DNA of 33,805 nucleotides from Octopus bimaculoides (lineage: Eukaryota), in contig NC_068997.1 in NCBI RefSeq assembly GCF_001194135.2, positions 9,197,300 to 9,231,104 on the forward strand. Reading direction: 5' to 3'. Position 1 is the stretch's first letter. Each line of letters begins with the position of its first letter. Position numbers and translations under genes: made by a program. The notes beneath the pieces were generated by a model. That model saw nothing but the letters and a program-made list of their open reading frames with translations, was not told where the DNA came from and did no database searches. This document shows positions 281 to 29,062 of this stretch, one piece after another.

Positions 281-590
281 TAATTTATGAAATATAAAAA
301 AAAAAAAAAATTATTATTTCCATGTATCTGAGAAAACTGATGGTCTTCAGTGTGATGTTACATAATATAAAGAATTCGGTAACAACAAATAGCTTGTTAT
401 GTCATAAATATTACTCTTGTAGGAAGAAAGAAAAAGATAAGGAAGAAAAACATTGAAAAAAAAAACAATAAAAAAAACGAAATTGCAATTGAAATATGAA
501 ATATGATCGATAAATTTGGTTATTTTGTGTTTAAAAAACATTTTCTGCAAATATTATTGTAACACAGAAATGGATTTCTTAAGGCATCTA

Positions 591-1990
591 CTAGAACAAT
601 ATTAGAGCTGATAACTTTAGCAAGCAGACAAAGAGAAGTTCTGGTTTGCTTGTTAATATTTCCATCCCATTATTCATGGTAGATTTATTTGCAGTAACAT
701 TAGTTTTGTGTTTTGCTGTGACATTTTTTCTTCTTTTCAATTCATTTTCTTTATATGTTTCCTTTTTGTCAATATCTGTTTTACGTTCAAAAGCCATTTT
801 TTTCTCATTGTTCTTTAATTTTTTCTTGCCATTTATGATGTCATTTGAATCAGAAGATAAGAAGACAGCATCAGCCAAGGGCAGTTCCTGCTGTTTGGTT
901 GCTACTGTAGAAGCAAGAGTTAATGTATTCACTGCGGAACTGTTGTTCAAAATATCTGTGATGAAGTTGTTCTGCAAGGTTTGATTATGTGACAACAGTG
1001 ATTTCAACACTTCTGCTAGTGATGAAGTATTGTTTAAGGCAATTTCTTCCAATACAACTGTACCATTTTGTTGGCTCCTTTGAGAAATCTCAAATTCTAT
1101 CCATTTTTGAAGAGCCAAGTTGTCCTGTGAATTGTTTAGTTGTGAACCGTCACTTCTTGTTACCAAATTCATGTCAGAAAAATTGCTTTCTGCTAGAATT
1201 TCATTCTGCACAGCTGTTTTATCATCGTCGTCGTCATCATCATCCTCATCCTCATCCTCCTCATCATCGTCATCATTAAATTTTGAATGTAAGGAAACAT
1301 TATCAGTTGAAGTCTCATGAAAAGCTTCATTTGCTTCTTTAGAAATATTTTCATTGAAATCGTTGGCCAGATTTGCAAATGTCGACAATTTTTTCAGTGT
1401 AAACTCTTCTGTAATACTAAGAGACTGATTTTGTGCAATTTGTTCAAATGCTGTCTGAGGATATTTTGTAGAATTATTTGCCATGTAAAGTTCAACATCT
1501 TTTAAATAGGGCTGTGGTTTCATAAAGACATTTCCAAAGCTAGATAAAGAATTGTTTTCAAACGGCTTCTTTCTAAATTTGTCTATTATATTTACACTTG
1601 TATTCTTCATTGGCATTGCACTGATTGATAGATTTCTCTTTGGGTTGGCATCATCAATTTCTTCTTCAAAGTGAAAATCTATTAACTTGATAGAATTATG
1701 CTTCTTTTTCAATTGCCTGCTTGATTGAAGAAAAGTGTTATTTCTCATAAGAAATCTTTTACGGTTTGGATCAAAGTTTCCAGAAGAGTTTCTTTGGCTG
1801 GAACTGTTTTCAGTGTGTGCAGCTGAAGAATAATCTATTATGATCAAAGAACTGGGGTCAGGGTTACCATTATTGCAAAAATCAGTGGAACAAGATTGAT
1901 AACAGGTCAAAAGTTTAGAGTCACGGAAACATTTGTTGCCCCTATTGATGTTATCACAAAGTCTGGCAAAAGATTTCACATTTCCTGTGT
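591..1990 (-). CDS. Coding exon 3 (terminal): C-terminal half of LU domain, long low-complexity stalk and GPI-like tail
   Basis: The (CT)n-CAG acceptor has its AG at 1992-1991. G from exon 2 + AC gives Asp, then TGNVKSFARLCDNINRGNKCFRDSKLLTCYQSCSTDFCN (cysteines 6-10, CN motif). The frame stays open for 1400 nt to TAG at 593-591 despite the AT-rich context. The C-terminus is ...MNNGMEILTSKPELLFVCLLKLSALILF. The GTG 'start' at 1979 in the ORF track is internal Val70. Confidence 0.93.
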
Positions 1991-2356
1991 CTGAAGAGAG
2001 AGAAAGAGAGAGGGAGAGGAAAAGAGAATGAAAGAGAGAGAGGTTAAAAGAAGAAGAAATTTATAACAACAAAAACAACAATAGTATTAACAATAACAAT
2101 AAAACATTAAACTGATAACAAATATGATGTCAAGGATAGGTACATTAATGATAATTATGTTGAAAGAAAAATTAATCTAATTTATGTATGGGAAAAATCA
2201 AGGTTTCACTGTTTTTAAGAAAACATTATTAAAAGCTGAGGGAAAATAAAACTTATTCTAGCAAGAATATAATGAGAATGACAAAATGACAAAAGACTTG
2301 CTTTTGTATTGTGTTTATTTATTTATTACTCCATTACTCATTTTTCTTACATATCT

Positions 2357-2710
2357 AGGATAAGAACGGACTGGGCAGAGTTCAGAGAGCTTCTACCTTT
2401 GTTGGTAACTAAGGGGCTCTCTCTCAGAGTGAAAGGCATGTTGTATGATGCCTGTGTATGTACAGCTATGCTACATGGCAGTGAGACATGGGTTTTGACT
2501 AAAGAGAACATGCAAAGGCTTGAAAGAAATGAAGCCAGCATTCCCCACTGGATGGGTAATGTCAGTGTTCATGTACAACAGAGTGTAAATGGTTTAAGAG
2601 AAAAACTGGGTATAAGAGGCATCAAAGGCTGTGTGCAAGAGGGAAAGACTGTGCTGGTTTGGTCATGTGATGCATATGGATGAGGACAGCTGCATAAAGA
2701 AGTGTCATCA
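2357..2710 (+). mobile_element. RTE-clade LINE reverse transcriptase C-terminal remnant
   Basis: Translates as RIRTDWAEFRELLPLL...KGMLYDACVCTAMLHGSETW...RLERNE...LREKLGIRGI, then after a frameshift RLCWFGHVMHMDEDSCIKKC. This matches RTE motifs (YGSETW; RLRWxGHVxRM). Confidence 0.85.
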
Positions 2711-3794
2711 CTCCCTAAAGCTTAACAAACCCTTTGACATGCCCAGTACCACCCTGGGGTGGTACTGCTCACATTTAGAACTTCTAGTCTAGATTGTTCC
2801 AGCAACTTCCAATTGATTTTGCACGGTGTCCCTTCCTTTTTTAACCACCACATATGATTGGCTAATGTCATATAATGTTGTGCCTCCCTTGGATTTTAAA
2901 AGAGGACCTGTGGTCATTAAACCTGGCTTTAAAGAGTCTCTCCTTCACTCATTGCTCCAATATATTTCTGTATATATGTGTCTCTCTATTGCTATCATTG
3001 TTACTGTTGTTGGTGCAAATTTTATGCATAACCAGTATTTAGAACCAGTGTTTAGAACTCAGTGTGCATCCTTATACATTGAAAGAGAAAGTTGTGAAGA
3101 GAACTTGAATATTATAATCAAAGTTTTCTTCCACTGGTCTCCATAGTGACAAAGATTACAGAGTACACAGAGAAAAAACAAAACTGGAAAGCTGGTTCTG
3201 AAATTATTTGATTACATCATGTTAGACGTGTGTCAGTATATAGTTTAAATATATGAATTATATATGAGTATATATATATATATATATATATATAAGACTG
3301 TAATATACAGGTATATATAGGCATGTGTTTATATGTTTATATGTATATAAACATGTGTGTGTCTGTATGTACATAGACAAGTAGGTGTGTGTGTGTATGT
3401 GTGTGCATGGGTGCATTTGTATATGTGTCTGTGTGTCAGTGTGCCCGTGTGTATCTATAGACATATGCATGTGTATGATGATATCCATTACCTGAGGTGG
3501 TGTAAGATACAGCATAAAAACAAACAAAAAAATTGAGAAAATATCTAAGATTACCAAATAAGCACAGACATTGAGAAAAGAAGTTATATAATTTTACAAA
3601 ATATTCTGTGTATGTTTGTAAGCACACATTGACAAAACAATATGATTCACAGTTTTTTTGTTTACATGAAATTAATGCTGTTTATGTTGATACATAACTT
3701 TGCTTTTATTCCTTTGGAGGTTATTTTTTAAAGTAGAGACACGTTCACCATAACGCATGTTCAAACTGCAGCAGTTGCAGAATTCTCTCTCACT

Positions 3795-3813
3795 TCCACT
3801 TTCTTTCTTTCTT

Positions 3814-3864
<51 letters not shown>

Positions 3865-4260
3865 CATTCCCTCTCTCTCTTTCACTCTCTTTTACTCTCT
3901 CTTTATCAACTCAACTGCATCTGCCTATGTCCATGTGTGTGTGTTTACACACACACACTCACACACACACTCACACACTCACACACACACTCACACACAC
4001 ACTCACAAACACCCCCCCACATATATATACATACATATACACATGTATACACACACACACACGCACACACTCACACACATATATATATACACACATATAT
4101 ATACATATGCGTGAAACTAATTGGTAAGATCAGCCCTGATGGATATATCATACTATATATTTCAGATAATATATACATATATACATTATATATATATATA
4201 TATATCTGTATTCATATATATAGGTATTAAAATATACATATATATGTATGTGTATAAAGA
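3795..4260. repeat. Compound microsatellite (CTTT/CT, CA, TA)
   Basis: Direct reading of the sequence. Confidence 0.9.
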
Positions 4261-4930
4261 ATTAATTCTGATGATGGCATAAGTTTCTATGCAGATCTTC
4301 ATTAGAGAACAAAAATTCAATATGTGATAGAAAGACAACAAGTTTAAGGTGGCCCCATTAAGAAATCAATGTATAAATACAACATGAATTGCACGTGATT
4401 TAGCAATAAACAGGGAGGAATTATTCTTGGATATAATTAAAGGTAAAAATTGGAAAATGAAATAAAAAACATTGGAAAATAAAATAAGGTTGGAGTTAAG
4501 TGAATGGTTTTTCAGATAAAATCATGGCGAAGGGAGATAAGTCATTATAAGTTTACACAAAGACAAATTAATAGTGAAAGGTAATTGTAAATGAATGAGA
4601 GATATCTTAGAGTGAGATAATTATGATGGGAAAGCTTAAAATTATGAAGGTTATTAAAATGGATAATTAAATAATTAATTAACGCTAATGGGATAAAGCA
4701 GAATATTTAATCAGGGCAATACATATTAGACATTATCAGAATAGTGTAAATTTGGAGGAGAAGAGGTTAAATTTATGATAGAGATTTACTTTTAAATATT
4801 TGGAATTAAATGTTAGATTTTCAGTCTTGTAGTTCTAGATATTCCTGATATAATTGTAAGTGGAAACAGCAAAGATGAATATGTTGAACTTAATTGGGTT
4901 ACTTAAGTAGAGTTATAGAGACATATTATC

Positions 4931-4932
<2 letters not shown>

Positions 4933-4972
<40 letters not shown>
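4933..4972. repeat. (TG)n microsatellite
   Basis: Direct reading of the sequence. Confidence 0.95.
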
Positions 4973-4975
<3 letters not shown>

Positions 4976-5604
4976 ATGATACCTTAATTAGATTCTGCAC
5001 TAGAGGCTTAAAAATTCAAATATTAAGTGCATACATATTTGTATATAAGAGTATAAGAGTGATTGGATATTAAGTTAACTTGGTTGTAGGTTAAGTATTC
5101 TACTTGTGAATTGAGGTTTCAGTTTCATACAAGAAAATTCAAATTATAATCCTTTAAACACATTCCTAATTATGTATTATTCTAATTTGTCAAAAGAAAC
5201 TTTTTGAAGTGTTTGCATTTATTAGAAATCTCAGATCTAACATTTAAGTTATAATCAAGTATAATTTTTTTTTTTACGTTAACATATTTCTCAGACTTTT
5301 GTCATATTAACATGTAGCTTGCATCTTTCAAGAAATTTGCATTGAATATTGATTACAATCCTGCATTCTTTAAATATCTAAGTATAGTTGATTAATTTGG
5401 TAACATTCTTCTTTTCTGGGAGCAAATATGGTTCAAAAGCAATATTAAAAAGGACAGTAGAGAGGAGATGAGAGATGATTAGAGGTGTAGGAGGGAGAGG
5501 AATGTCAGAAGATAGAGCTGGTTGAGAAAATTCACAATTTTCTGGGTGAAGAGCATCATGTAATGGTAAGGACAATAAACTGTTTGGAGTTGGTGTGGCA
5601 ACTA

Positions 5605-5988
5605 AACACAGAATTATTCACAATGATCTGAACATGAGCAAAACTTGTGCAAAGTTTGTTTCCAGGGTACTCAGTGATAAAAATCCTGGTAAAAAAAACT
5701 GTTCTTCACCTTCCCTACAATCTAGACTTTGTTCCCTGTAACTTTAGTTCGTTCCCCAAGCTGAAGGAGAACCTCAGTGGTAGTCGTTTTGAAGACACAG
5801 GAGCCTGTGACAAGGGTCCTGGACAGCTTCACTTTGAAGGACTTCCCATGGGCCCTCATGAAGTGGCTAGAGTGCTACAACAAGTGCATTCAAGTCAGAA
5901 GATCCTACATCAAAGAAAATTAGAGCTTTGTATTTCTTTGAAATTAATTAATTTCTCTTGAAATGGTTCGAAAACTTCTGAAATGCAC

Positions 5989-5990
<2 letters not shown>
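5605..5990 (+). mobile_element. Decayed, internally deleted mariner (Tc1/mariner) transposase remnant
   Basis: Fragments read HRIIHNDLNMSKTCAKFVSRVL (cf. WVPHxL), VLHLPYNLDFVPCNFSSFPKLKENLSGSRFED (cf. HPPYSPDLAPxDFxLFPKLK) and KWLECYNKCIQ (cf. RWxxC). Frameshifts are present. Confidence 0.75.
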
Positions 5991-6041
<51 letters not shown>

Positions 6042-6500
6042 ATGTCATTATTCAGTTTTATTTCAAGATTTCTTGCCAACAGAGAAAGAACCGGTTTCTA
6101 ACTTAGATCCAAGTCTCCTTCACTGGAATTTCAACATCAACAGGGTATTTTTGTATGTATGTATGTATATGTGCAGATTTGTCTGTTATGTTTTATGTAT
6201 GTGTTCTCATGCATATAGTTGCATGTCTAGACATTTTCATACATACTTAAATGATAAACTTCTGGAAAGTTTTGCAGATTTTTACGGTTCCAGTAATGGA
6301 TTGGAACTATAGTCTTCGAATAAGCTTCCTCCTTTTTGGTTTTGAGAAGCCTAATTTCTCAAGACTGGTATTTGTCTAGTGTGTTACACATCCCAGTGTC
6401 CTAATAATTACAGGTATAAACCTGAAATTGTAATCTGGATAGAGTAGCTGTAGATTCCTCAATAGTTCAGTGTGGGTATTTTCTTTTTAGCTGATCTTTA
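6042..6500 (-). mobile_element. 3' end of R4/Dong-like (restriction-like endonuclease) non-LTR retrotransposon, with 3' UTR abutting (CA)n
   Basis: Minus frame reads ELLRNLQLLYPDYNFRFIPVIIRTLGCVTH*TNTSLEKLGF...LIRRL*FQSITGTVKICKTFQKFII*, which resembles the RLE C-terminus (xPxxIGALG...LxxLG...GTxKI). The 3' UTR ends aaatcttgaaataaaactgaataatga and is followed by (CA)n. The same UTR occurs at ~22310-22455. Confidence 0.7.
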
Positions 6501-6598
6501 GTATATATGTGTATGCAGAAACATATACACATACTCACATACACACAAATATTTACACACACATATGTACCTATAAGGCTTTATATGTATATATATAT

Positions 6599-6637
<39 letters not shown>

Positions 6638-6907
6638 CACATATACACATACAAACCCATAGAAAGTCACTAAGTATTCTAACTGTCAAGAATTTAAATT
6701 TATATCTTCAAAACAATGAAAATAAATTTCGCTTCTAAGACAGTTAAAACTTCTGTGAAATTTTATTAAAAATATATGTTTGAAGGAGTTTTGGGGTTAT
6801 TCACTGCAATAGTAATATAGAAATGAAAATAATGCAAACTTAAAAGTTTAAAGCAAACAAGGGGGTCATAGATAAAGATCTCTCCTAAAGAATTGTTATT
6901 TGAAATA

Positions 6908-7145
6908 NNNNNNNNNNNNNNNNNNNNNNNNNNNNNNNNNNNNNNNNNNNNNNNNNNNNNNNNNNNNNNNNNNNNNNNNNNNNNNNNNNNNNNNNNNNNN
7001 NNNNNNNNNNNNNNNNNNNNNNNNNNNNNNNNNNNNNNNNNNNNNNNNNNNNNNNNNNNNNNNNNNNNNNNNNNNNNNNNNNNNNNNNNNNNNNNNNNNN
7101 NNNNNNNNNNNNNNNNNNNNNNNNNNNNNNNNNNNNNNNNNNNNN
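6908..7145. other. Assembly gap (N); further gaps at 9975-10971, 13370-13793, 20402-20916, 21756-22227, 28643-28652, 29670-30285
   Basis: N runs, each bordered on at least one side by (TA)n, (GA)n or (CAT)n repeats. Confidence 0.99.
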
Positions 7146-7201
<56 letters not shown>

Positions 7202-7641
7202 TATATATATTACATGTATGCATACATATATCTATGGGTATAAATAGACAGACAAGCAGACAGACAGGCAAACAGACAGACAGACAGATAGATGAATGTA
7301 TATGAATGTATGTAAGTGTATGTTATTGCTTAAGATTCCGTTCCTTTCTCAAACAAACAAACAAACAAAACAAATAACATCAACAACAACATCAACAACA
7401 ATATAATATTTTTCCCCTTGTCACCATTGACACACTCTGCTTTATGATAGGAGCTTTGAAAGATCTATAATAAAAGTTTATAAACGCTTGGTGTGGAAAG
7501 TGTTTGTTTCTTTTCAGCGAGGGAGTTCTCAAGGGAACAGTTTTCTTGTAAATATAGATATTTATAATTTTTTATTTTACAAACATTAATGATTTATTCA
7601 TGTATAATTTTATTGTTTCTCAGGTCTTTTCATTGTTTATT

Positions 7642-7840
7642 TTATTTGTTTCAGTCATTGGAGTGGGGGGGGCCATGCTGGAGCACTGCTCTGAAGGATT
7701 TTTGTTGAAAAAAAAAATCCACCCCAGAACTTATTTGTTTTTTTTTTTGTTTTTTTTAAAGTCTGGTACTTATTCTATTGATGTATTTTGCTGGACTGTG
7801 AAGTTATGAGGACGTAAACAGACCAACACCGGTTGTCAAG
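7642..7840 (-). mobile_element. SINE 3' portion (same family as 1-166)
   Basis: The motif tttgtttcagtcatt...ggccatgctggagcac...ggtacttattctat...gacgtaaaca is shared with copies at 9381-9470 (+), 28005-28105 (+) and 31476-31580 (-). Confidence 0.65.
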
Positions 7841-7957
7841 GCCTGATAAGTCAGGACTGACCTGGAGTTAAACAACAAGTGTAGCAGCAAAACCCTCCAC
7901 CACAACAACAATGATAAAATAACATTAACTACAACAACCAGAATCAACGAGACTTAA

Positions 7958-8177
7958 CCCTTTAGCGTTCAAATTAATATATCAAAAGTAATCCTTATTC
8001 ATTTACATTTTTAAAAATTAATCCGGTATTATCTTGTAGCTTCAAGATTTGAAAGATGTAATTGTTTATTTTTAGAATGACATTGTAGGGTAGGTGTGAG
8101 ATGCTGGTTCTGGCCAGTTTGAGCATAAAATGAGTAGAACATTTGGACCGGATGTAGCCGGTTTAAACACTGAAGGG
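7958..8177. mobile_element. piggyBac-type MITE (TTAA TSD)
   Basis: TTAA at 7954-7957 and 8178-8181. TIRs CCCTTTAGCGTTCAAA / CCCTTCAGTGTTTAAA match at 13 of 16 positions. No ORF. Confidence 0.75.
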
Positions 8178-8280
8178 TTAATGCTCATTATACACTTACA
8201 ATTTACCAAACAACAACAACAACAACAACACCCTTACAATTTTCTTGATTTACTCGTTATCTGAAGTAAAAGATTGTTAC

Positions 8281-8427
8281 CTGAATCAATAACTTTGGCA
8301 GCAAGACAGAATTGGGAAGCGCAATTAGTGGGTTTTCTCAATCCTGTTTGACCAAAGAATGGATGAAATTCACAATGACGATCAGTGCCAACTCCACTGC
8401 ACAAGTGGCATTGAAGTGCACCAATTC
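8281..8427 (-). CDS. Coding exon 2: N-terminal half of LU (Ly6/uPAR, three-finger) domain
   Basis: The acceptor is poly-T+GCAG (AG at 8429-8428) and the donor is TCAG|GTAAC (GT at 8280-8279). The exon is 147 nt, phase 1 to phase 1, and open: (G)IGALQCHLCSGVGTDRHCEFHPFFGQTGLRKPTNCASQFCLAAKVIDS(D). It contains LU cysteines 1-5, including the LxCxxC start. Confidence 0.93.
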
Positions 8428-8622
8428 CTGCAAAAAAAAAAAAAAGAAAGAAATGAAGAATTAACTGAAAATACCATGTATATTGAATAATACATTTAAG
8501 ACAGTCATAGTGTTAATTGGTAAGATTAGTGAATGCTATATTATAAAAGGACATTTGATTGCAGAATCTTAATTGCTTAGTGAGTTTTTTTCAATGATTG
8601 TTGTTGTAAATTGTTAATGTAT

Positions 8623-8770
8623 GTAGTCAAGTGGTTACGGTATTAGGATCATGATAATAAAATTGTGGGTTCAATTCTTGGGCTGGTTAGATTGTAAATG
8701 GAGCATTACTTAAGAAAGGCACTTAATTCCATCTTGCTTCAGTCTACTCAGCTGTAATGAGTACTAGTCA
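8623..8770 (+). mobile_element. tRNA-derived SINE (degenerate)
   Basis: A-box-like tagtcaagtgg and B-box-like ggttcaattct (8668-8678), followed by aaggcacttaatt...cttgcttcagtctactcagctg...aatgagta. Confidence 0.55.
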
Positions 8771-8805
8771 AATGAACAGTAGTCAAGTGCTGGTGCTACC
8801 CTCTA

Positions 8806-8863
8806 TCACATCCTGTGTCACATCCTGTGTCACATCCTGTGTCACATCCTGTGTCACATCCTG
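8806..8863. repeat. 12-bp tandem repeat (TCACATCCTGTG) x ~4.8
   Basis: Four perfect units plus 10 nt of a fifth. Confidence 0.95.
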
Positions 8864-9137
8864 GATGCCTCTTCTGGGTCAAGAATAGGTGGTCTGAAGG
8901 AGTGTCTGCACGTGCTCATGGCTACATAGGCATTTGTAGCAGCTCTGTGATATTGGCTGACATGCAAATATACATTTCTCTATTTCAAAGTTGGCTCAGT
9001 CGACTTTGTGTGGTTACACCTTTTGTGTTACACCTTTTCCCAGAAACCTTTCTTTGTGAGTCTGTTCTTGCCATCTCATCCAATCGATGCTTTGGTCACA
9101 TCTATTCATAAACATTAAGATCTTTTTGATAGAAAAA

Positions 9138-9335
9138 CTATGTGACTTGCCATGTTTCACATATGGACAGCAGAACAGTTTTCAGCTTCATGTTAAAGAT
9201 CCTTAATTCTGTGTTTGTTGACATGGTCTGTAATCTCCTGAACGCCGTTGTAACCTTCTCAATCCTTGTCTTTATGTCCTGATCTGCTCTGCCCTTCTTA
9301 TTGATAAAACCTCCCAGGTATGTGAAATAGCAAAT
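9138..9335 (-). mobile_element. RTE-clade LINE RT remnant
   Basis: Translates as YFTYLGGFINKKGRADQDIKTRIEKVTTAFRRLQTMSTNTELRIFNMKLKTVLLSICETW (cf. FTYLGS...DIxxRIxKA...KLRIF...LLYGxETW). Confidence 0.8.
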
Positions 9336-9380
9336 CAAATTTGTTTGTGAGGGATGGTTGTGGTGATGGTCTTGTACACA

Positions 9381-9470
9381 GCAAAAAATAAGTACTGCAG
9401 TTGATTTGTTCAATGGTGCTCCAGAATGACCAAAGTCTAATGACTGAAACAAGTCAAAGACAAAAGCTAA
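9381..9470 (+). mobile_element. SINE 3' end
   Basis: The sequence ggtgctccagaatgacc...aatgactgaaacaagt is the reverse complement of the 7642-type copies. Confidence 0.6.
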
Positions 9471-10971
9471 AAGATAAGTACATATATATGCATGTACGTG
9501 TGTGTGTGTTCACATCTATGTATGTATATATGTGGGTATACATAGGTCACTTTGGTCATTAACCTACCATTTACTTTGTCTTATCCTTTCATTTATCCCC
9601 CCACCTATATATATATATATATATACATATATATATGCATATATATATATATATATAGATACACACACACACACACATATATATGCATCTACATATATAT
9701 ATGCATATATATATTTATATTTATATATTTGATCCTTTATATTGAACACTCAATATTTCATCTACATCAATACTTTATTTCATGGTGCCATCCATTTTTA
9801 TTTTATTTTATTTTATATTATATATTGTATATTATATTATATATTGTATATTCCATATTCTATACCCCACATTGGTTCTGCAGGAATATAAATAAAACAT
9901 AAAAAACAGACAGTGTTGGAACTCTTTTAAACAAAATAATATATGTATATATATCATCATCATCATCATCATCGNNNNNNNNNNNNNNNNNNNNNNNNNN
10001 NNNNNNNNNNNNNNNNNNNNNNNNNNNNNNNNNNNNNNNNNNNNNNNNNNNNNNNNNNNNNNNNNNNNNNNNNNNNNNNNNNNNNNNNNNNNNNNNNNNN
10101 NNNNNNNNNNNNNNNNNNNNNNNNNNNNNNNNNNNNNNNNNNNNNNNNNNNNNNNNNNNNNNNNNNNNNNNNNNNNNNNNNNNNNNNNNNNNNNNNNNNN
10201 NNNNNNNNNNNNNNNNNNNNNNNNNNNNNNNNNNNNNNNNNNNNNNNNNNNNNNNNNNNNNNNNNNNNNNNNNNNNNNNNNNNNNNNNNNNNNNNNNNNN
10301 NNNNNNNNNNNNNNNNNNNNNNNNNNNNNNNNNNNNNNNNNNNNNNNNNNNNNNNNNNNNNNNNNNNNNNNNNNNNNNNNNNNNNNNNNNNNNNNNNNNN
10401 NNNNNNNNNNNNNNNNNNNNNNNNNNNNNNNNNNNNNNNNNNNNNNNNNNNNNNNNNNNNNNNNNNNNNNNNNNNNNNNNNNNNNNNNNNNNNNNNNNNN
10501 NNNNNNNNNNNNNNNNNNNNNNNNNNNNNNNNNNNNNNNNNNNNNNNNNNNNNNNNNNNNNNNNNNNNNNNNNNNNNNNNNNNNNNNNNNNNNNNNNNNN
10601 NNNNNNNNNNNNNNNNNNNNNNNNNNNNNNNNNNNNNNNNNNNNNNNNNNNNNNNNNNNNNNNNNNNNNNNNNNNNNNNNNNNNNNNNNNNNNNNNNNNN
10701 NNNNNNNNNNNNNNNNNNNNNNNNNNNNNNNNNNNNNNNNNNNNNNNNNNNNNNNNNNNNNNNNNNNNNNNNNNNNNNNNNNNNNNNNNNNNNNNNNNNN
10801 NNNNNNNNNNNNNNNNNNNNNNNNNNNNNNNNNNNNNNNNNNNNNNNNNNNNNNNNNNNNNNNNNNNNNNNNNNNNNNNNNNNNNNNNNNNNNNNNNNNN
10901 NNNNNNNNNNNNNNNNNNNNNNNNNNNNNNNNNNNNNNNNNNNNNNNNNNNNNNNNNNNNNNNNNNNNNNN

Positions 10972-11008
<37 letters not shown>

Positions 11009-11147
11009 TATATATATGTGTATGTATGTATGTGCGTATGTTTTACCTAAGGTAATAAATCCCAAAATCCACATCAGGAGATTTGTCTGTTCTTTGAATA
11101 TTCTCTGGTTTTATTGTTGTTTTTATGTCCATTTTTGTTTTTCTTCT

Positions 11148-22455: not shown

Positions 22456-22904
22456 ACTAACACATACACACTACACATATGTATGCACGCACACACACAC
22501 ACACAAACACACACTTACACAGAAGATAAAACAAGATCCAAGGACACTGGTGGTAGTCTGCAAGACTTGTATTACTTAGATGAAGTGACAAAAATGATGA
22601 CAGCAGTGAATGACAGGAGAAAAACAAATGAAAGGTCACAGAGTCTTGCATCTTTTATATTTGGGTGACTGGCTGCAACTGATGGGAAACACAAGACAGT
22701 GTGAGCTTGCATACATACACAAGAAGTTGTAGGAGAGAACAAACATGTGAGACAGTTATGTGATGATCGATGATGTAACACTTGTCCATATGTTAACAAC
22801 TCTACAACTATCATGGGTCCCAAGTCACAGTACCACATTGTCAAGAGAACTCACAGAAAACAAGCACAGACATACAGATACACTTACACAAATACATATC
22901 ATCA

Positions 22905-23110
22905 TCGCCACCATCATCATCAACAACATTTAATGTCAGTCTTCCATGCAGGCATAGGTTGGATGGTTTGACAGGATCTGGTAAGCCAGAGAGGAGCACC
23001 AGGCTCCATTTGTCTGCTTTAGCAAGTTTTCTATGGCCAGATGCCCTTCATAACACCATCCACTTTACAGAGTGTACTGGGTGCTCTTTATATGGCACCT
23101 GCACTGTTGA
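22905..23110 (-). mobile_element. SINE-like repeat with (GAT)n tail
   Basis: The reverse complement carries gaagggcatctggccatagaaaac...catgc...tgcatggaagactgacattaaatg + (GAT)n. Sister copies lie at ~15160-15215, 27320-27390, 27450-27700 and 33510-33640. Confidence 0.6.
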
Positions 23111-23180
23111 ATTTTATGTGGCACCAACACCAGTGAGGTGGCCAGGTAACTTGTATGACAAAGAGAGAGAATGGAAAACC

Positions 23181-23487
23181 TGAATGATGATGGGTACAAG
23201 TAGCTTGAGATCCCTGGAGTTGGACAATATCTTGCACAGAGAAATGAAAGACAAAAAGTCATCACTGCATATTTCAAGCACCTCAAACTTCTCTTGAAAT
23301 CAAAACTCAACTCAAGGAACCTTGTGACTGCCATCAACATATGGGCTGTTGCTGTAGTCCGCTATAGTGCACCCATCCTGAAATGGACACAAGCGGAGAT
23401 TAACCAACTTGATTGCACTACCTGAAAGACAATGCATGGTTCCCTCCACCCTAAGGTGAATGTACACAAGCTCTACATGAAGAGGGG
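23181..23487 (+). mobile_element. R4/Dong-like retrotransposon RT (thumb region) remnant
   Basis: Translates as YK*L..LELDNILHREMKD(K), then after a frameshift VITAYFKHLKLLLKSKLNSRNLVTAINIWAVAVVRYSAPILKWTQAEINQLDCTT*KTMHGSLHPKVNVHKLYMKRG (cf. LNxxNxIxAINTxAVPVxRYS...W...LD...RK...LHP..V.RLY). It ends at a (TAA)/(CAA) tract. Confidence 0.8.
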
Positions 23488-23589
23488 TAATGATAATAGT
23501 AATAATAATAATAATAACAACAACAACAACAACAACAATGATAATAATAATAAGTAATAATAATAATGATAATAATAATAATTTCTACC

Positions 23590-23940
23590 ATAGGCACAAG
23601 GCCAGCAATTTTAAGAGATGTAAGTCAATTACATCAATCACAGAGCTTATATGGTACTTATATTATTGACCCCAAAAGGATGCAGAGACACCAACACTAC
23701 TTATCAAATGATGTTGGGGACAAACACAAACAGAAAGACACACACATATACATACACACATACACACACACACACATGCATACACATACACACATGATGG
23801 GCATTTTCAGTTTCTTTCCTGTAAATACACCCACAAGGCTTTGGTTAGCTCAAGGACAGTAGAAGACACTTGCCCAAGGTGGCAGGCAGTGGGACTGAAC
23901 CTGGAATTATGTAGTTGGGAAGCAAGTTTCTTACCACACA
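23590..23940. mobile_element. Adjacent SINE fragments (+ 23590-23690; - 23700-23940)
   Basis: ggtacttatattattgaccccaaaaggatg, then gatgttggggacaaacac...cagtagaagacacttgcccaaggtggcaggcagtgggactgaacc...gggaagcaagtttcttaccacaca. Confidence 0.7.
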
Positions 23941-24184
23941 CACACGTGCATGTAAATATTTATTCTACAAATACAGGAACTATCAAATAAATATAATTTA
24001 TCTTCTCATAATTTCAATGCGTTTGACACATCTGTAACAAAATAACAAAATAAATATATAAATAAAAATTAAAAAAATAAGGGAAATAAATGATATTTAT
24101 CTGACATTCTGCAATTGTTGAACACTAACAAAAAAATATTTGGTTAACAAATGAATATGTTGACTGAGAAACTGCATAGCAAAT

Positions 24185-24483
24185 AATATGCATACATACA
24201 CACGTACATACATTCGTACATACATACATACATACAAACATACATACATACATATGTGTGTACATATATATACATACAAACATGTATGTATACGTACATA
24301 TATACTATATTATATTATTATATTGCATTATATGTAAGTGTGTGTGTATATATAAATATATATATATATATGTATATATATTTGTTTATATATATATATA
24401 TATATATATATACATACACATACATATATATATATACATTTATATATATACATACATATACATATACATATGCATATATATAC

Positions 24484-24534
<51 letters not shown>

Positions 24535-24610
24535 TATATATATATATATACATACATATTTATGTATGTGTGTGTATATATATATATGTGGGACACACAC
24601 ACACACATAC
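24185..24610. repeat. Long compound (CATA)/(TA)/(CA) microsatellite at 5' end of intron 1
   Basis: Direct reading of the sequence. Confidence 0.9.
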
Positions 24611-24672
24611 GATTTATATTTTGCCTAATCATAGATATTCAATCATTTATGAAAATGTAAAGTATTTCTTAC

Positions 24673-24721
24673 CTGTTATTATCATTGACACAGACAGCAA
24701 TGCTAACCACATATGATTCAT
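24673..24721 (-). CDS. Coding exon 1 (signal peptide) of LU/three-finger domain protein gene
   Basis: Minus strand reads ATG AAT CAT ATG TGG TTA GCA TTG CTG TCT GTG TCA ATG ATA ATA ACA G|GTAAGA = [16 protein letters not shown] + 1 nt. The donor is strong (AG|GTAAGA) and its phase 1 matches the exon at 8427-8281. The joined peptide is hydrophobic and ends in ...GIGA before LQC. M4 is an alternative start. Confidence 0.8.
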
Positions 24722-25509
24722 AATATATATATATATATTTGTATATATACACAAAGATATATATATATATCAAATGAAAAACAAGCTCTAAATTAAAACA
24801 ATATGTAACTGGAAGCCAACAATTCGTTCTATAGGTTTCAATATATGTGGTCAAGAAGTGGAAAATTTGCTGCAAGTTCAAACTACAATAACATACAAAA
24901 TGGCAAGCTTCATTTGAAATATTTTCTATTTGCCTATCAAAGGTAGAAAGGGACAAATATATTTTCGTTTTTTTCCTGTCTTTGGCTCCTTCAACCAAAA
25001 CTCAGTAATCCCCTTTTCAATATTGACTCTTCATAATCCCTGTTTGCTTGGTTCCCCTGGCACAAGGTCCTTTTTTTAATATACGTTCCACCCCACAAAC
25101 CCTATTTTGTTCTTGGATTATCTTATTCTTTTTATTTTCTTATTGTTGCTGTTGGTGTTGTTTTTTTTTTATATATATAACTTGTCTTTTAAAGAAATTT
25201 TGGTTGTGATTTTTATGAAAGTAGTTTTTGTTTTTTGCTTCTCCTTTTTTGCTTTAGGAAGCAAATAGAGAATCCTGTTTAACTATTTACATTCTTCTCT
25301 TTGTCCTTGGAACTGTATGTTTAGACTTTATAGCCATTAGGAACTGACAAAGGTGAAGTTTGTGGGAGATGAAGGTTATAAGAGGAAATCTATGATAAAT
25401 ACCATTTCAAAAAAATTTACAACACAAACAAAAAACAGCAAGTAAAAACAAAAACTAAGTTTACAAAAAACAGGTCAAGGTTATTATAGATTAAAGACAA
25501 ATCAAAGTT

Positions 25510-28459: not shown

Positions 28460-28583
28460 ATACTACACACACACATCCATATCTAACATACACATGCATG
28501 CACATACACACACATGCATTTATGTATATATGCACAAATATATATATATTGTGTGTGTATACATATATATACATACATACATA

Positions 28584-28642
<59 letters not shown>

Positions 28643-28683
28643 NNNNNNNNNNTATGATGATATATATATATATATATATGATG

Positions 28684-28728
<45 letters not shown>

Positions 28729-28887
28729 GCTATATATGTATATATATACATATATAGATATATATAGATATGGATATACATACATATGTACACACGCATA
28801 CACATATATATATATGTACATACATATATGCACACACACATGCACACACACACATACATATATACATACATACACACACATTCATAC

Positions 28888-28938
<51 letters not shown>

Positions 28939-29062
28939 TAGATAGATAGATAGATATAGATATATATAGATATATATGCTTACTTACATGCATATAACTA
29001 CCTATTTACGTCTTTCTTTCTCCTCCTTCTCTCTCATTCTCTGTATCTATCTATCTATCTTC

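Follow-up and report, generated by a model that had tools for sequence, protein, structure and literature searches.

LU (Ly6/uPAR), or three-finger, proteins rank with the most widely reused modules for extracellular binding in animals and serve in complement control, lipolysis, Wnt co-reception, the tuning of nicotinic receptors and K+ channels and the assembly of septate junctions. To our knowledge, almost all known single-domain members sit directly on a glycosylphosphatidylinositol (GPI) anchor. Here, we describe a gene in a 33,805-nucleotide (nt) stretch of Octopus bimaculoides chromosome CM046617.1 (assembly GCA_001194135.2), the whole of which is referred to below as the window. The gene has three exons and probably encodes a 531-residue glycoprotein of the secretory pathway, with a signal peptide, an LU head, an N-glycosylated stalk and a GPI end, that belongs to a mollusc-wide and uncharacterized family of stalked LU proteins. 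A near-constant head on a very long and fast-evolving stalk would represent a different, as yet unstudied, deployment of the LU module. Comparative and expression studies of Ly6 proteins in molluscs will overlook the gene, since it is apparently absent from octopus protein sets and the names given to its gastropod relatives are misleading.

Several described LU proteins resemble parts of the octopus protein, C4.4A and GPIHBP1 or SP-10 coming closest in architecture. LYPD6 and LYPD6B (6gbi, 6ib6 and 6zso), the best structural match to the octopus head, are GPI-anchored proteins with a single LU domain that extends past the terminal CN motif. At 171 residues with short flanking tails, LYPD6 has no long stalk, the two proteins are only 15–22% identical to the octopus head, and the octopus protein does not match the corresponding Pfam family PF16975 (UPAR_LY6_2). 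C4.4A (LYPD3) is GPI-anchored and carries a glycosylated Ser/Thr/Pro-rich region between its LU part and the anchor; this linker is roughly 80 residues long, compared with about 380–1200 residues in the stalked family. C4.4A also has two LU domains, the first of which lacks the 7–8 disulfide, whereas the octopus protein has one, and C4.4A has been named as an atypical multi-LU protein (PMC6600238). GPIHBP1 and SP-10 (ACRV1) are LU proteins with an intrinsically disordered region, which is strongly acidic in GPIHBP1 (PMC6600238). That region precedes the LU domain, is short (∼26–50 residues for GPIHBP1) and has an additional exon to itself; the octopus stalk follows the LU domain, is much longer and is contained within exon 3. 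Lynx1, CD59 and the snake toxins share with the octopus head the predicted fold, the ten-cysteine logic, the terminal CN and a three-exon gene with phase-1 introns, but they are domains of 70–80 residues with the GPI signal or the stop codon right after the CN and with a CC doublet, and their sequence similarity to the octopus head is not significant. For Quiver/Sleepless (QVR; PF17064) and the insect proteins Boudin, Coiled, Crooked and Crimpled, the connection runs through arthropod relatives of the head that come near the QVR threshold, while the octopus protein itself is unmatched. The literature, the coverage of which was incomplete, yielded neither a lone LU domain carried on several hundred stalk residues nor a mollusc or cephalopod Ly6 family; this is absence of evidence only.

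The coding sequence is a 1596-nt open reading frame (ORF) on the minus strand (24721..24673 + 8427..8281 + 1990..591) that encodes 531 amino acids (aa) followed by a TAG stop codon. The three exons contribute 49, 147 and 1400 nt, respectively, and are separated by two phase-1 introns of 16,245 and 6,290 nt as assembled. Both introns obey the GT-AG rule, with the donors GTAAGA and GTAACA and with long polypyrimidine tracts ending in CAG at the acceptors. No other in-frame ATG lies between an upstream in-frame stop codon and the ATG at 24721. A stop-free run of 466 codons has a chance probability of ∼8e-17 at 34% GC, and the other two frames of exon 3 contain 35 and 59 stops. A hydropathy scan detects two hydrophobic segments only, at residues ∼4–22 and 517–531. 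Exactly ten cysteines lie between C23 and C104 (from LQCHLC to CSTDFCN), and an eleventh, C521, is located in the C-terminal tail. The five listed runs of N are all intronic (four in intron 1 and one in intron 2) and spliced RNA contigs join the exons directly; thus, the assembly gaps have no effect on exon continuity or reading frame in this isoform, and they hide no extra exon of it. The first-pass annotation of this stretch, which was made from the letters alone, had proposed this three-exon structure with its phases, splice sites and intron lengths, the ten cysteines within residues 21–105, a long stalk behind a three-finger head, roughly 20 N-x-S/T sequons and a hydrophobic tail without a cytoplasmic segment, and at the level of the sequence its description stands, with the three-finger head supported by a predicted fold. 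The octopus locus has a single product on record, a 385-aa ORF starting at an internal methionine, and a profile search run exhaustively over 1.84 billion representatives returned no cephalopod protein with this head. The octopus gene is thus apparently unannotated, and it is plausible to call it hidden, as was done at first.

Transcription of the locus is supported by RNA runs from at least three species, many of which contain exon 3 words, with a low word depth (3–14×) in all runs. In these comparisons O. bimaculoides is organism A, and the junctions were read from loose contig ends on short stretches. The junction between exons 2 and 3 (8281/1990) is present in O. bimaculoides RNA contigs of runs X1, X2, X17 and X18, where the contig sequence beyond 8281 corresponds, in reverse complement, to the opening 30 nt of exon 3. 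Furthermore, the RNA contigs of X1, X17 and X18 cover exon 2 from exactly 8281 to 8427, whereas DNA run X15 continues through both flanks. The junction between exons 1 and 2 (24673/8427) was read only in four RNA runs (X7, X8, X47 and X10) of a single study on a close relative, organism B. Hence both of the junctions put forward at the outset are used, the first of them in organism B and the second in O. bimaculoides itself. The organism-B contigs are identical to the window in exon 1 and differ by one base at the start of exon 2. One X7 contig of 1111 nt runs from 755 nt of exon 3 through all 147 nt of exon 2 into exon 1 and the 5' untranslated region (UTR) with nothing intervening, and the organism-B contigs extend ∼159–224 nt upstream of 24722 (X7 record 953–1111; X47 record 1–173). 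In the exon 1 region (24655–24724), all of the 31-mers sampled (three words) are present in DNA runs of organisms A, B, C and F, and this identity across the DNA of four species indicates that exon 1 is real. For comparison, 30–50% of the exon 3 words are retained in RNA runs of organisms B and C; on these three sampled words only, the signal-peptide exon and its donor appear to be better conserved than the stalk.

The head was modeled with AlphaFold2 and the model was compared with the PDB using Foldseek. With an alignment of 69 head sequences (alignment A2), the head reached a predicted local distance difference test score (pLDDT) of 90.2 and a predicted template-modeling score of 0.81, with high confidence through residue ∼119; with a four-sequence alignment the pLDDT was 54.6 and the model was unusable. 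The best match is LYPD6 (6gbi), with an E value of 4.7e-4 and a template-modeling score of 0.60 over 105 columns. Other matches include uPAR, TbRII (the TGF-beta type II receptor ectodomain), GPIHBP1, LYPD6B, Lynx1, C4.4A (6ion), CD177, TEX101 and snake toxins, and each of the top 50 PDB matches is an LU domain, a three-finger toxin or the ectodomain of a TGF-beta-family receptor, which has a related three-finger fold. The ten plesiotypic cysteines (C23, C26, C35, C52, C57, C77, C86, C95, C99 and C104) end in a C-x4-C-N motif at N105. Eight cysteines, R75 and N105 are invariant in the 69-sequence alignment, and all ten cysteines and the family-invariant residues are intact in the octopus protein. 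C86 and C95 are missing together in arthropod relatives with eight cysteines, which is the behavior expected of the LU 7–8 disulfide; in vertebrates, loss of this bond is known only in the first domains of multi-LU proteins (PMC6600238). The disulfides of the octopus head are predicted to pair as 1–5, 2–3, 4–6, 7–8 and 9–10. In the LU archetype (PMC6600238; Leth et al.), a signal-peptide exon precedes two domain exons, the introns are phase 1, the one inside the domain falls at the loop 2 tip and the GPI signal is encoded by the final exon. The octopus gene agrees with this archetype in its 1/1 phases, in the placement of its tail in exon 3 and in the position of intron 2, which splits the codon of D66 in the turn between model strands 56–64 and 70–78 of the central hairpin. 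Beyond the CN motif, an extension of 18 residues (N.GNPDP..L....Y; NGNPDPSSLIIIDYSSAA in the octopus protein) is conserved in gastropods and packs against the domain in the model. The predicted structure, the cysteine logic and the structure of the gene therefore support assignment of the head as a three-finger/LU domain.

The profile search that returned no cephalopod protein identified 103 relatives. By comparison, a word-index protein search gave a single candidate and no match for the head alone and 57 candidates for alignment A2, and seems to perform poorly on short cysteine-rich queries. Stalked relatives, all of them predicted and uncharacterized proteins, are present in six gastropod genera: Lottia gigantea (LOTGIDRAFT_157014, 811 aa; E = 3.8e-35), Patella vulgata (LOC126821513, 749 aa; E = 2.4e-33), Haliotis rufescens (LOC125372489, 742 aa), Pomacea canaliculata (C0Q70_03030, 1315 aa), Biomphalaria glabrata (LOC129929001, 1173 aa) and Plakobranchus ocellatus (PoB_000539800, 1257 aa). 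The same layout is found in further unnamed ENA and Logan entries. The gastropod heads are 50–63% identical to the octopus head (60% over residues 20–123 for Patella) and share with it the family signature CSGVG.DR.CE ... KSFARLCDN..RGN.C..D.KLLTCY.SC..D.CN.GNPDP ... Y. The gastropod proteins are orthologues, and the octopus protein is the cephalopod orthologue of a mollusc-wide stalked-LU family. The presence of the stalked architecture, with longer stalks, in six gastropod genera implies that it predates the cephalopods. Two of the relatives, P0106 of Haliotis cracherodii and P0014 of B. glabrata, bear misleading automatic names ('FK506-binding protein 5-like' and 'protein PFC0760c'), presumably owing to the low-complexity stalk.

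Outside the molluscs, where the relatives are likewise labeled uncharacterized, the annelid Owenia fusiformis has a 543-aa protein with two heads (P0010) and a 209-aa relative. Two tandem heads joined by a linker also occur in P0015, P0024, P0062, P0066 and P0072, and nine stretches of the 1103-aa protein P0028 match the head profile, five of which pass the local filter. The head thus also occurs as a repeated module. The arthropod relatives (P0022, P0025, P0027, P0038, P0039 and others) are proteins of 145–170 aa with eight cysteines, GPI-type tails and no stalk, in which TYY replaces the TCY of molluscs. Small arthropod and annelid relatives score 18–26.6 bits against Pfam QVR, all below the gathering threshold of 27.3, and the louse Pediculus protein PHUM571200 carries PF17064 in precomputed annotation. 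A trace of UPAR_LY6_2 (E = 0.12) was detected in a sea-spider relative only, and the Haliotis protein P0006 matched no Pfam family. We found neither a named Drosophila orthologue nor a statement on conservation outside insects in the insect Ly6 literature. The small QVR-like arthropod Ly6 proteins are more distant relatives of the stalked family, and the initial label 'Quiver-like' is a weak one for the octopus protein, as it is only these small relatives that approach the QVR model.

The octopus stalk comprises ∼380 residues (124–504), is devoid of cysteine and is rich in Asn, Ser, Lys, Leu, Asp and Glu. It contains 22 N-x-S/T sequons, compared with 8.1 ± 2.4 expected (z = 5.9), and none of 5000 composition-preserving shuffles reached this number. 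The 38 listed coding differences between exon 3 and contigs of three other species comprise 16 synonymous and 22 non-synonymous changes, corresponding to a ratio of non-synonymous to synonymous substitution rates (dN/dS) of ∼0.34 (∼277 synonymous and ∼1118 non-synonymous sites). No stop codon interrupts exon 3 in these three species, one apparent stop being a two-base change that gives Gln. In the Octopus-like organisms B, C and D, a 12-nt in-frame insertion at 1414 relative to the window adds NKSS and with it one extra sequon. The dN/dS ratio, the lack of stops and the in-frame indel indicate that the stalk is coding and under moderate rather than strong purifying selection. The possibility that it is untranslated 3' sequence was rejected because the ORF statistics and dN/dS, an indel that keeps the frame, the hydrophobic tail at the end and the architecture of the orthologues all speak against it. 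The stalk is probably disordered and, judging from its sequons, would be heavily N-glycosylated.

The gastropod stalks are longer (580–1190 aa, the octopus stalk being the shortest among the full-length molluscan members), essentially free of cysteine and richer in Ser/Thr/Pro (fraction 0.21–0.32), where the octopus stalk is enriched in N-linked sequons, and there is no alignable similarity between octopus and gastropod stalks. The gastropod stalks share among themselves a short island, G[IV][VM]IWP ... EED[KR]EE..IEPY[RK].N.T (in P0003, P0005, P0002, P0006 and P0004; for example residues 486–530 of P0003). This island, which is not evident in the octopus stalk, might be a gastropod-specific site of binding or processing. 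The octopus stalk has several di- and tribasic clusters (NRKRF, KKKH and KRRK among them) and, in its middle, an uninterrupted 18-residue block of Asp and Glu (1221–1276, residues ∼305–322). The block draws very many unrelated reads of the (GAT)n type in every run. A run of Asp is also present in the gastropod relative P0004, and the disordered region of GPIHBP1 is likewise acidic.

Both ends of the protein have the appearance of processed signals. At the N-terminus, the hydrophobic region spans residues 5–16 and G17-I18-G19 satisfies the -3/-1 rule on inspection, and we infer cleavage near G19|A20, which would leave the usual two to three residues before the first cysteine. At the C-terminus, N505-N506-G507, the expected omega site, is followed by a polar nine-residue spacer and by 15 hydrophobic residues that end at the stop codon and give the top hydropathy window of the protein. 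Small residues, a short spacer and a hydrophobic end at the stop are the classic layout of a GPI signal, and the C-terminus most likely gives way to a GPI anchor. In 11 of 12 relatives, small residues likewise come before a hydrophobic C-terminus, P0008 being the one without.

A number of observations weigh against the gene model or the assignment of its product. The octopus protein, searched in full or as the head alone, matches no Pfam family at E ≤ 10, including the UPAR_LY6, QVR, UPAR_LY6_2, Toxin_TOLIP and CD59 families. Neither of two head profiles yielded a PDB sequence match, and an hhalign alignment of A2 with CD59 fell short of significance and extended only over the YxxCxxDLCN motif at the C-terminal end. 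The case for membership of the LU superfamily is built on the predicted structure, the pattern of cysteines and the structure of the gene, as no curated sequence model is matched, and the cysteine pattern itself deviates in having C-x3-C where LU proteins usually have a CC doublet. The signal-peptide and GPI calls were made by eye and from hydropathy only. The sequon enrichment is confined to the octopus protein, the gastropod stalks having no such excess.

The remaining points of this kind concern the 5' end. Exon 1 is not covered in the contigs of eight O. bimaculoides RNA runs examined at that position (nine were inspected in all), four of which gave AT-microsatellite noise there and four nothing, and the indexed exon 1 words are absent from every listed O. 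bimaculoides RNA run. In the O. bimaculoides contig X17, exon 2 is instead joined to a different upstream sequence of 20 nt, CTGTTCAGATTTTCCTTCAT, followed by G. This sequence has no match in the readable part of the window with up to two mismatches allowed. Translated in the LU frame, it gives ...VQIFLH-G, an open and hydrophobic stretch that suggests the end of another signal peptide; its exon would then lie in an assembly gap or beyond 33805. The gene probably uses alternative first exons, with a variable 5' end and a second upstream exon in at least one O. bimaculoides library. Exon 1 is accordingly only the presumed 5' exon in O. bimaculoides, since the RNA runs examined from this species lack it and the sequence upstream of exon 2 in X17 differs from it.

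Other interpretations of the locus can be weighed against this evidence. One is that the protein is shed or secreted, either by cleavage of the stalk at a basic cluster or because the tail is left unprocessed, with the head acting as a soluble ligand in the manner of SLURP-1 or Drosophila Boudin and the stalk serving as a pro-region. Soluble LU proteins are well known (PMC6600238), the stalk offers several di- and tribasic clusters, and P0008 lacks the hydrophobic end. However, P0008 may be a truncated gene model, and no basic cluster occupies a position shared between octopus and gastropods, as expected for stalks that do not align. Retention of the hydrophobic C-terminus in 11 of 12 relatives argues that anchoring matters, and we consider a shed form to be unlikely.

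The hydrophobic C-terminus might alternatively be retained as a transmembrane helix, giving a tail-anchored type I membrane protein without a cytoplasmic tail. The segment is hydrophobic and its assignment as a GPI signal was by inspection, but it is only 15 residues long, is broken by Lys524 and ends exactly at the stop codon, with the small-residue cluster N-N-G placed nine residues upstream as in a classic GPI signal. Relatives have the same layout with S-S-S or G-S-G-A-S clusters, and exon 3 is where LU genes carry the GPI signal (PMC6600238). We consider a transmembrane tail to be unlikely.

A third interpretation is close to that of the first-pass annotation, namely an LU protein specific to octopus or cephalopods in which the stalk is a lineage innovation and the head modulates nicotinic-like (chemotactile) receptors or Shaker-type channels in trans. 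The three-finger head, the presence of Lynx1 among its structural matches, the touch of the QVR model in small arthropod relatives and an architecture just as first described would be in keeping with such a role. The claim of lineage specificity does not hold, however, with longer stalks in Lottia, Patella, Haliotis, Pomacea, Biomphalaria and Plakobranchus and the octopus stalk the shortest of the full-length members. The first-pass annotation had named a wide occurrence of the long stalk among molluscan homologues as grounds for refuting its reading, and this is in substance what the gastropods show, although their proteins are only predicted and uncharacterized. Moreover, LYPD6, uPAR, TbRII and GPIHBP1 rank higher than or equal to Lynx1, and the octopus head has no QVR match, leaving this interpretation improbable as a whole. 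Finally, a decaying pseudogene or a chance ORF with low-level transcription, which the 3–14× RNA depth in all runs and the lack of annotation on record might suggest, is very hard to reconcile with the ORF statistics (∼8e-17), the dN/dS of ∼0.34, an in-frame indel, the absence of stops in three other species, ten intact cysteines and invariant residues and correct splicing.

A GPI-anchored, stalked LU glycoprotein with orthologues across molluscs is therefore the interpretation that we favor. In such a protein, the slowly evolving head, conserved since cephalopods and gastropods diverged, would bind a conserved extracellular or membrane partner, and the fast-evolving, glycan-coated stalk would serve as a spacer, keeping the head raised by tens of nanometres over the lipid-anchored end. 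The sequence of the stalk would be free to drift while selection keeps its length and glycan cover. Analogies with described systems diverge as to the nature of the partner: LYPD6 acts with LRP6 in Wnt signaling, Lynx1 and QVR act on nicotinic acetylcholine receptors (nAChRs) and voltage-gated K+ (Kv) channels, insect Ly6 proteins act at septate junctions and GPIHBP1 binds a secreted enzyme. A link to the nAChR-like or chemotactile receptors of octopus would be speculation. More broadly, but only as a tentative proposal to which we give somewhat less than even weight, molluscs, and perhaps lophotrochozoans, may possess an undescribed class of LU proteins in which one strongly conserved head (∼60% identical between octopus and limpet), with an essential and conserved partner that this would imply, is carried on a mucin-like spacer of 400–1200 residues above a GPI anchor; these would be the first LU proteins built for long-range or trans-cellular presentation, with the unannotated octopus gene possibly using alternative first exons that supply different signal peptides. 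The features of the locus are summarized in Table 1.

Table 1. Features of the stalked-LU gene and its introns in the window (nt positions; - denotes the minus strand; TRF, Tandem Repeats Finder).
Feature	Position	Strand	Evidence
5' UTR of the exon-1 isoform, AT-rich and microsatellite-like	24722..24881 (extent approximate)	-	Organism-B contigs; extent presumed for O. bimaculoides
Exon 1, coding: Met1-Thr16 and first base of Gly17, most of the putative signal peptide	24673..24721	-	Sequence, GT donor, organism-B RNA
Intron 1, phase 1, 16,245 nt, four gaps, many microsatellites	8428..24672	-	GT..AG; removed whole in RNA contigs
Gaps in intron 1	9975-10971, 13370-13793, 20402-20916, 21756-22227		N runs
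Exon 2: end of the putative signal peptide and first half of the LU domain, Cys 1-5 (C23, C26, C35, C52, C57)	8281..8427	-	RNA contigs
Intron 2, phase 1, 6,290 nt, one gap; interrupts the Asp66 codon at the central hairpin (loop 2) tip	1991..8280	-	GT..AG; RNA
Exon 3a: second half of the LU domain, Cys 6-10 (C77, C86, C95, C99, C104-N105), and post-CN extension NGNPDPSSLIIIDYSSAA to residue 123	1818..1990	-	Patella identity, invariant columns, model
Exon 3b: stalk, residues 124-504	675..1817	-	Open frame, sequon enrichment, X7 RNA contigs
Exon 3c: probable GPI-attachment signal, N505-N506-G507, spacer MEILTSKPE and hydrophobic end LLFVCLLKLSALILF	594..674	-	Hydropathy
Stop codon TAG (591-593) and start of the 3' UTR	520..593	-	Sequence; RNA contigs extend through 520, the edge of the stretch examined
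Example microsatellites	3947-4249, 4933-4972, 5991-6040, 9606-9728, 21548-21755, 24220-24587, 28538-28977		TRF

Three ORFs within the introns, at 2309–2683 (+), 9138–9452 (-) and 5647–5961 (+), resembled decayed retrotransposon or transposase fragments but gave no significant Pfam match. Microsatellites of the (AC)n, (TA)n, (CT)n and (TTA)n types, amounting to 85 TRF rows, crowd both introns and the sequence upstream; presumably because of those in the introns, the stretch 400–8600 or part of it occurs mostly in human sequencing runs. A (TA)n or (CT)n array adjoins most of the assembly gaps on one or both sides and probably gave rise to them.

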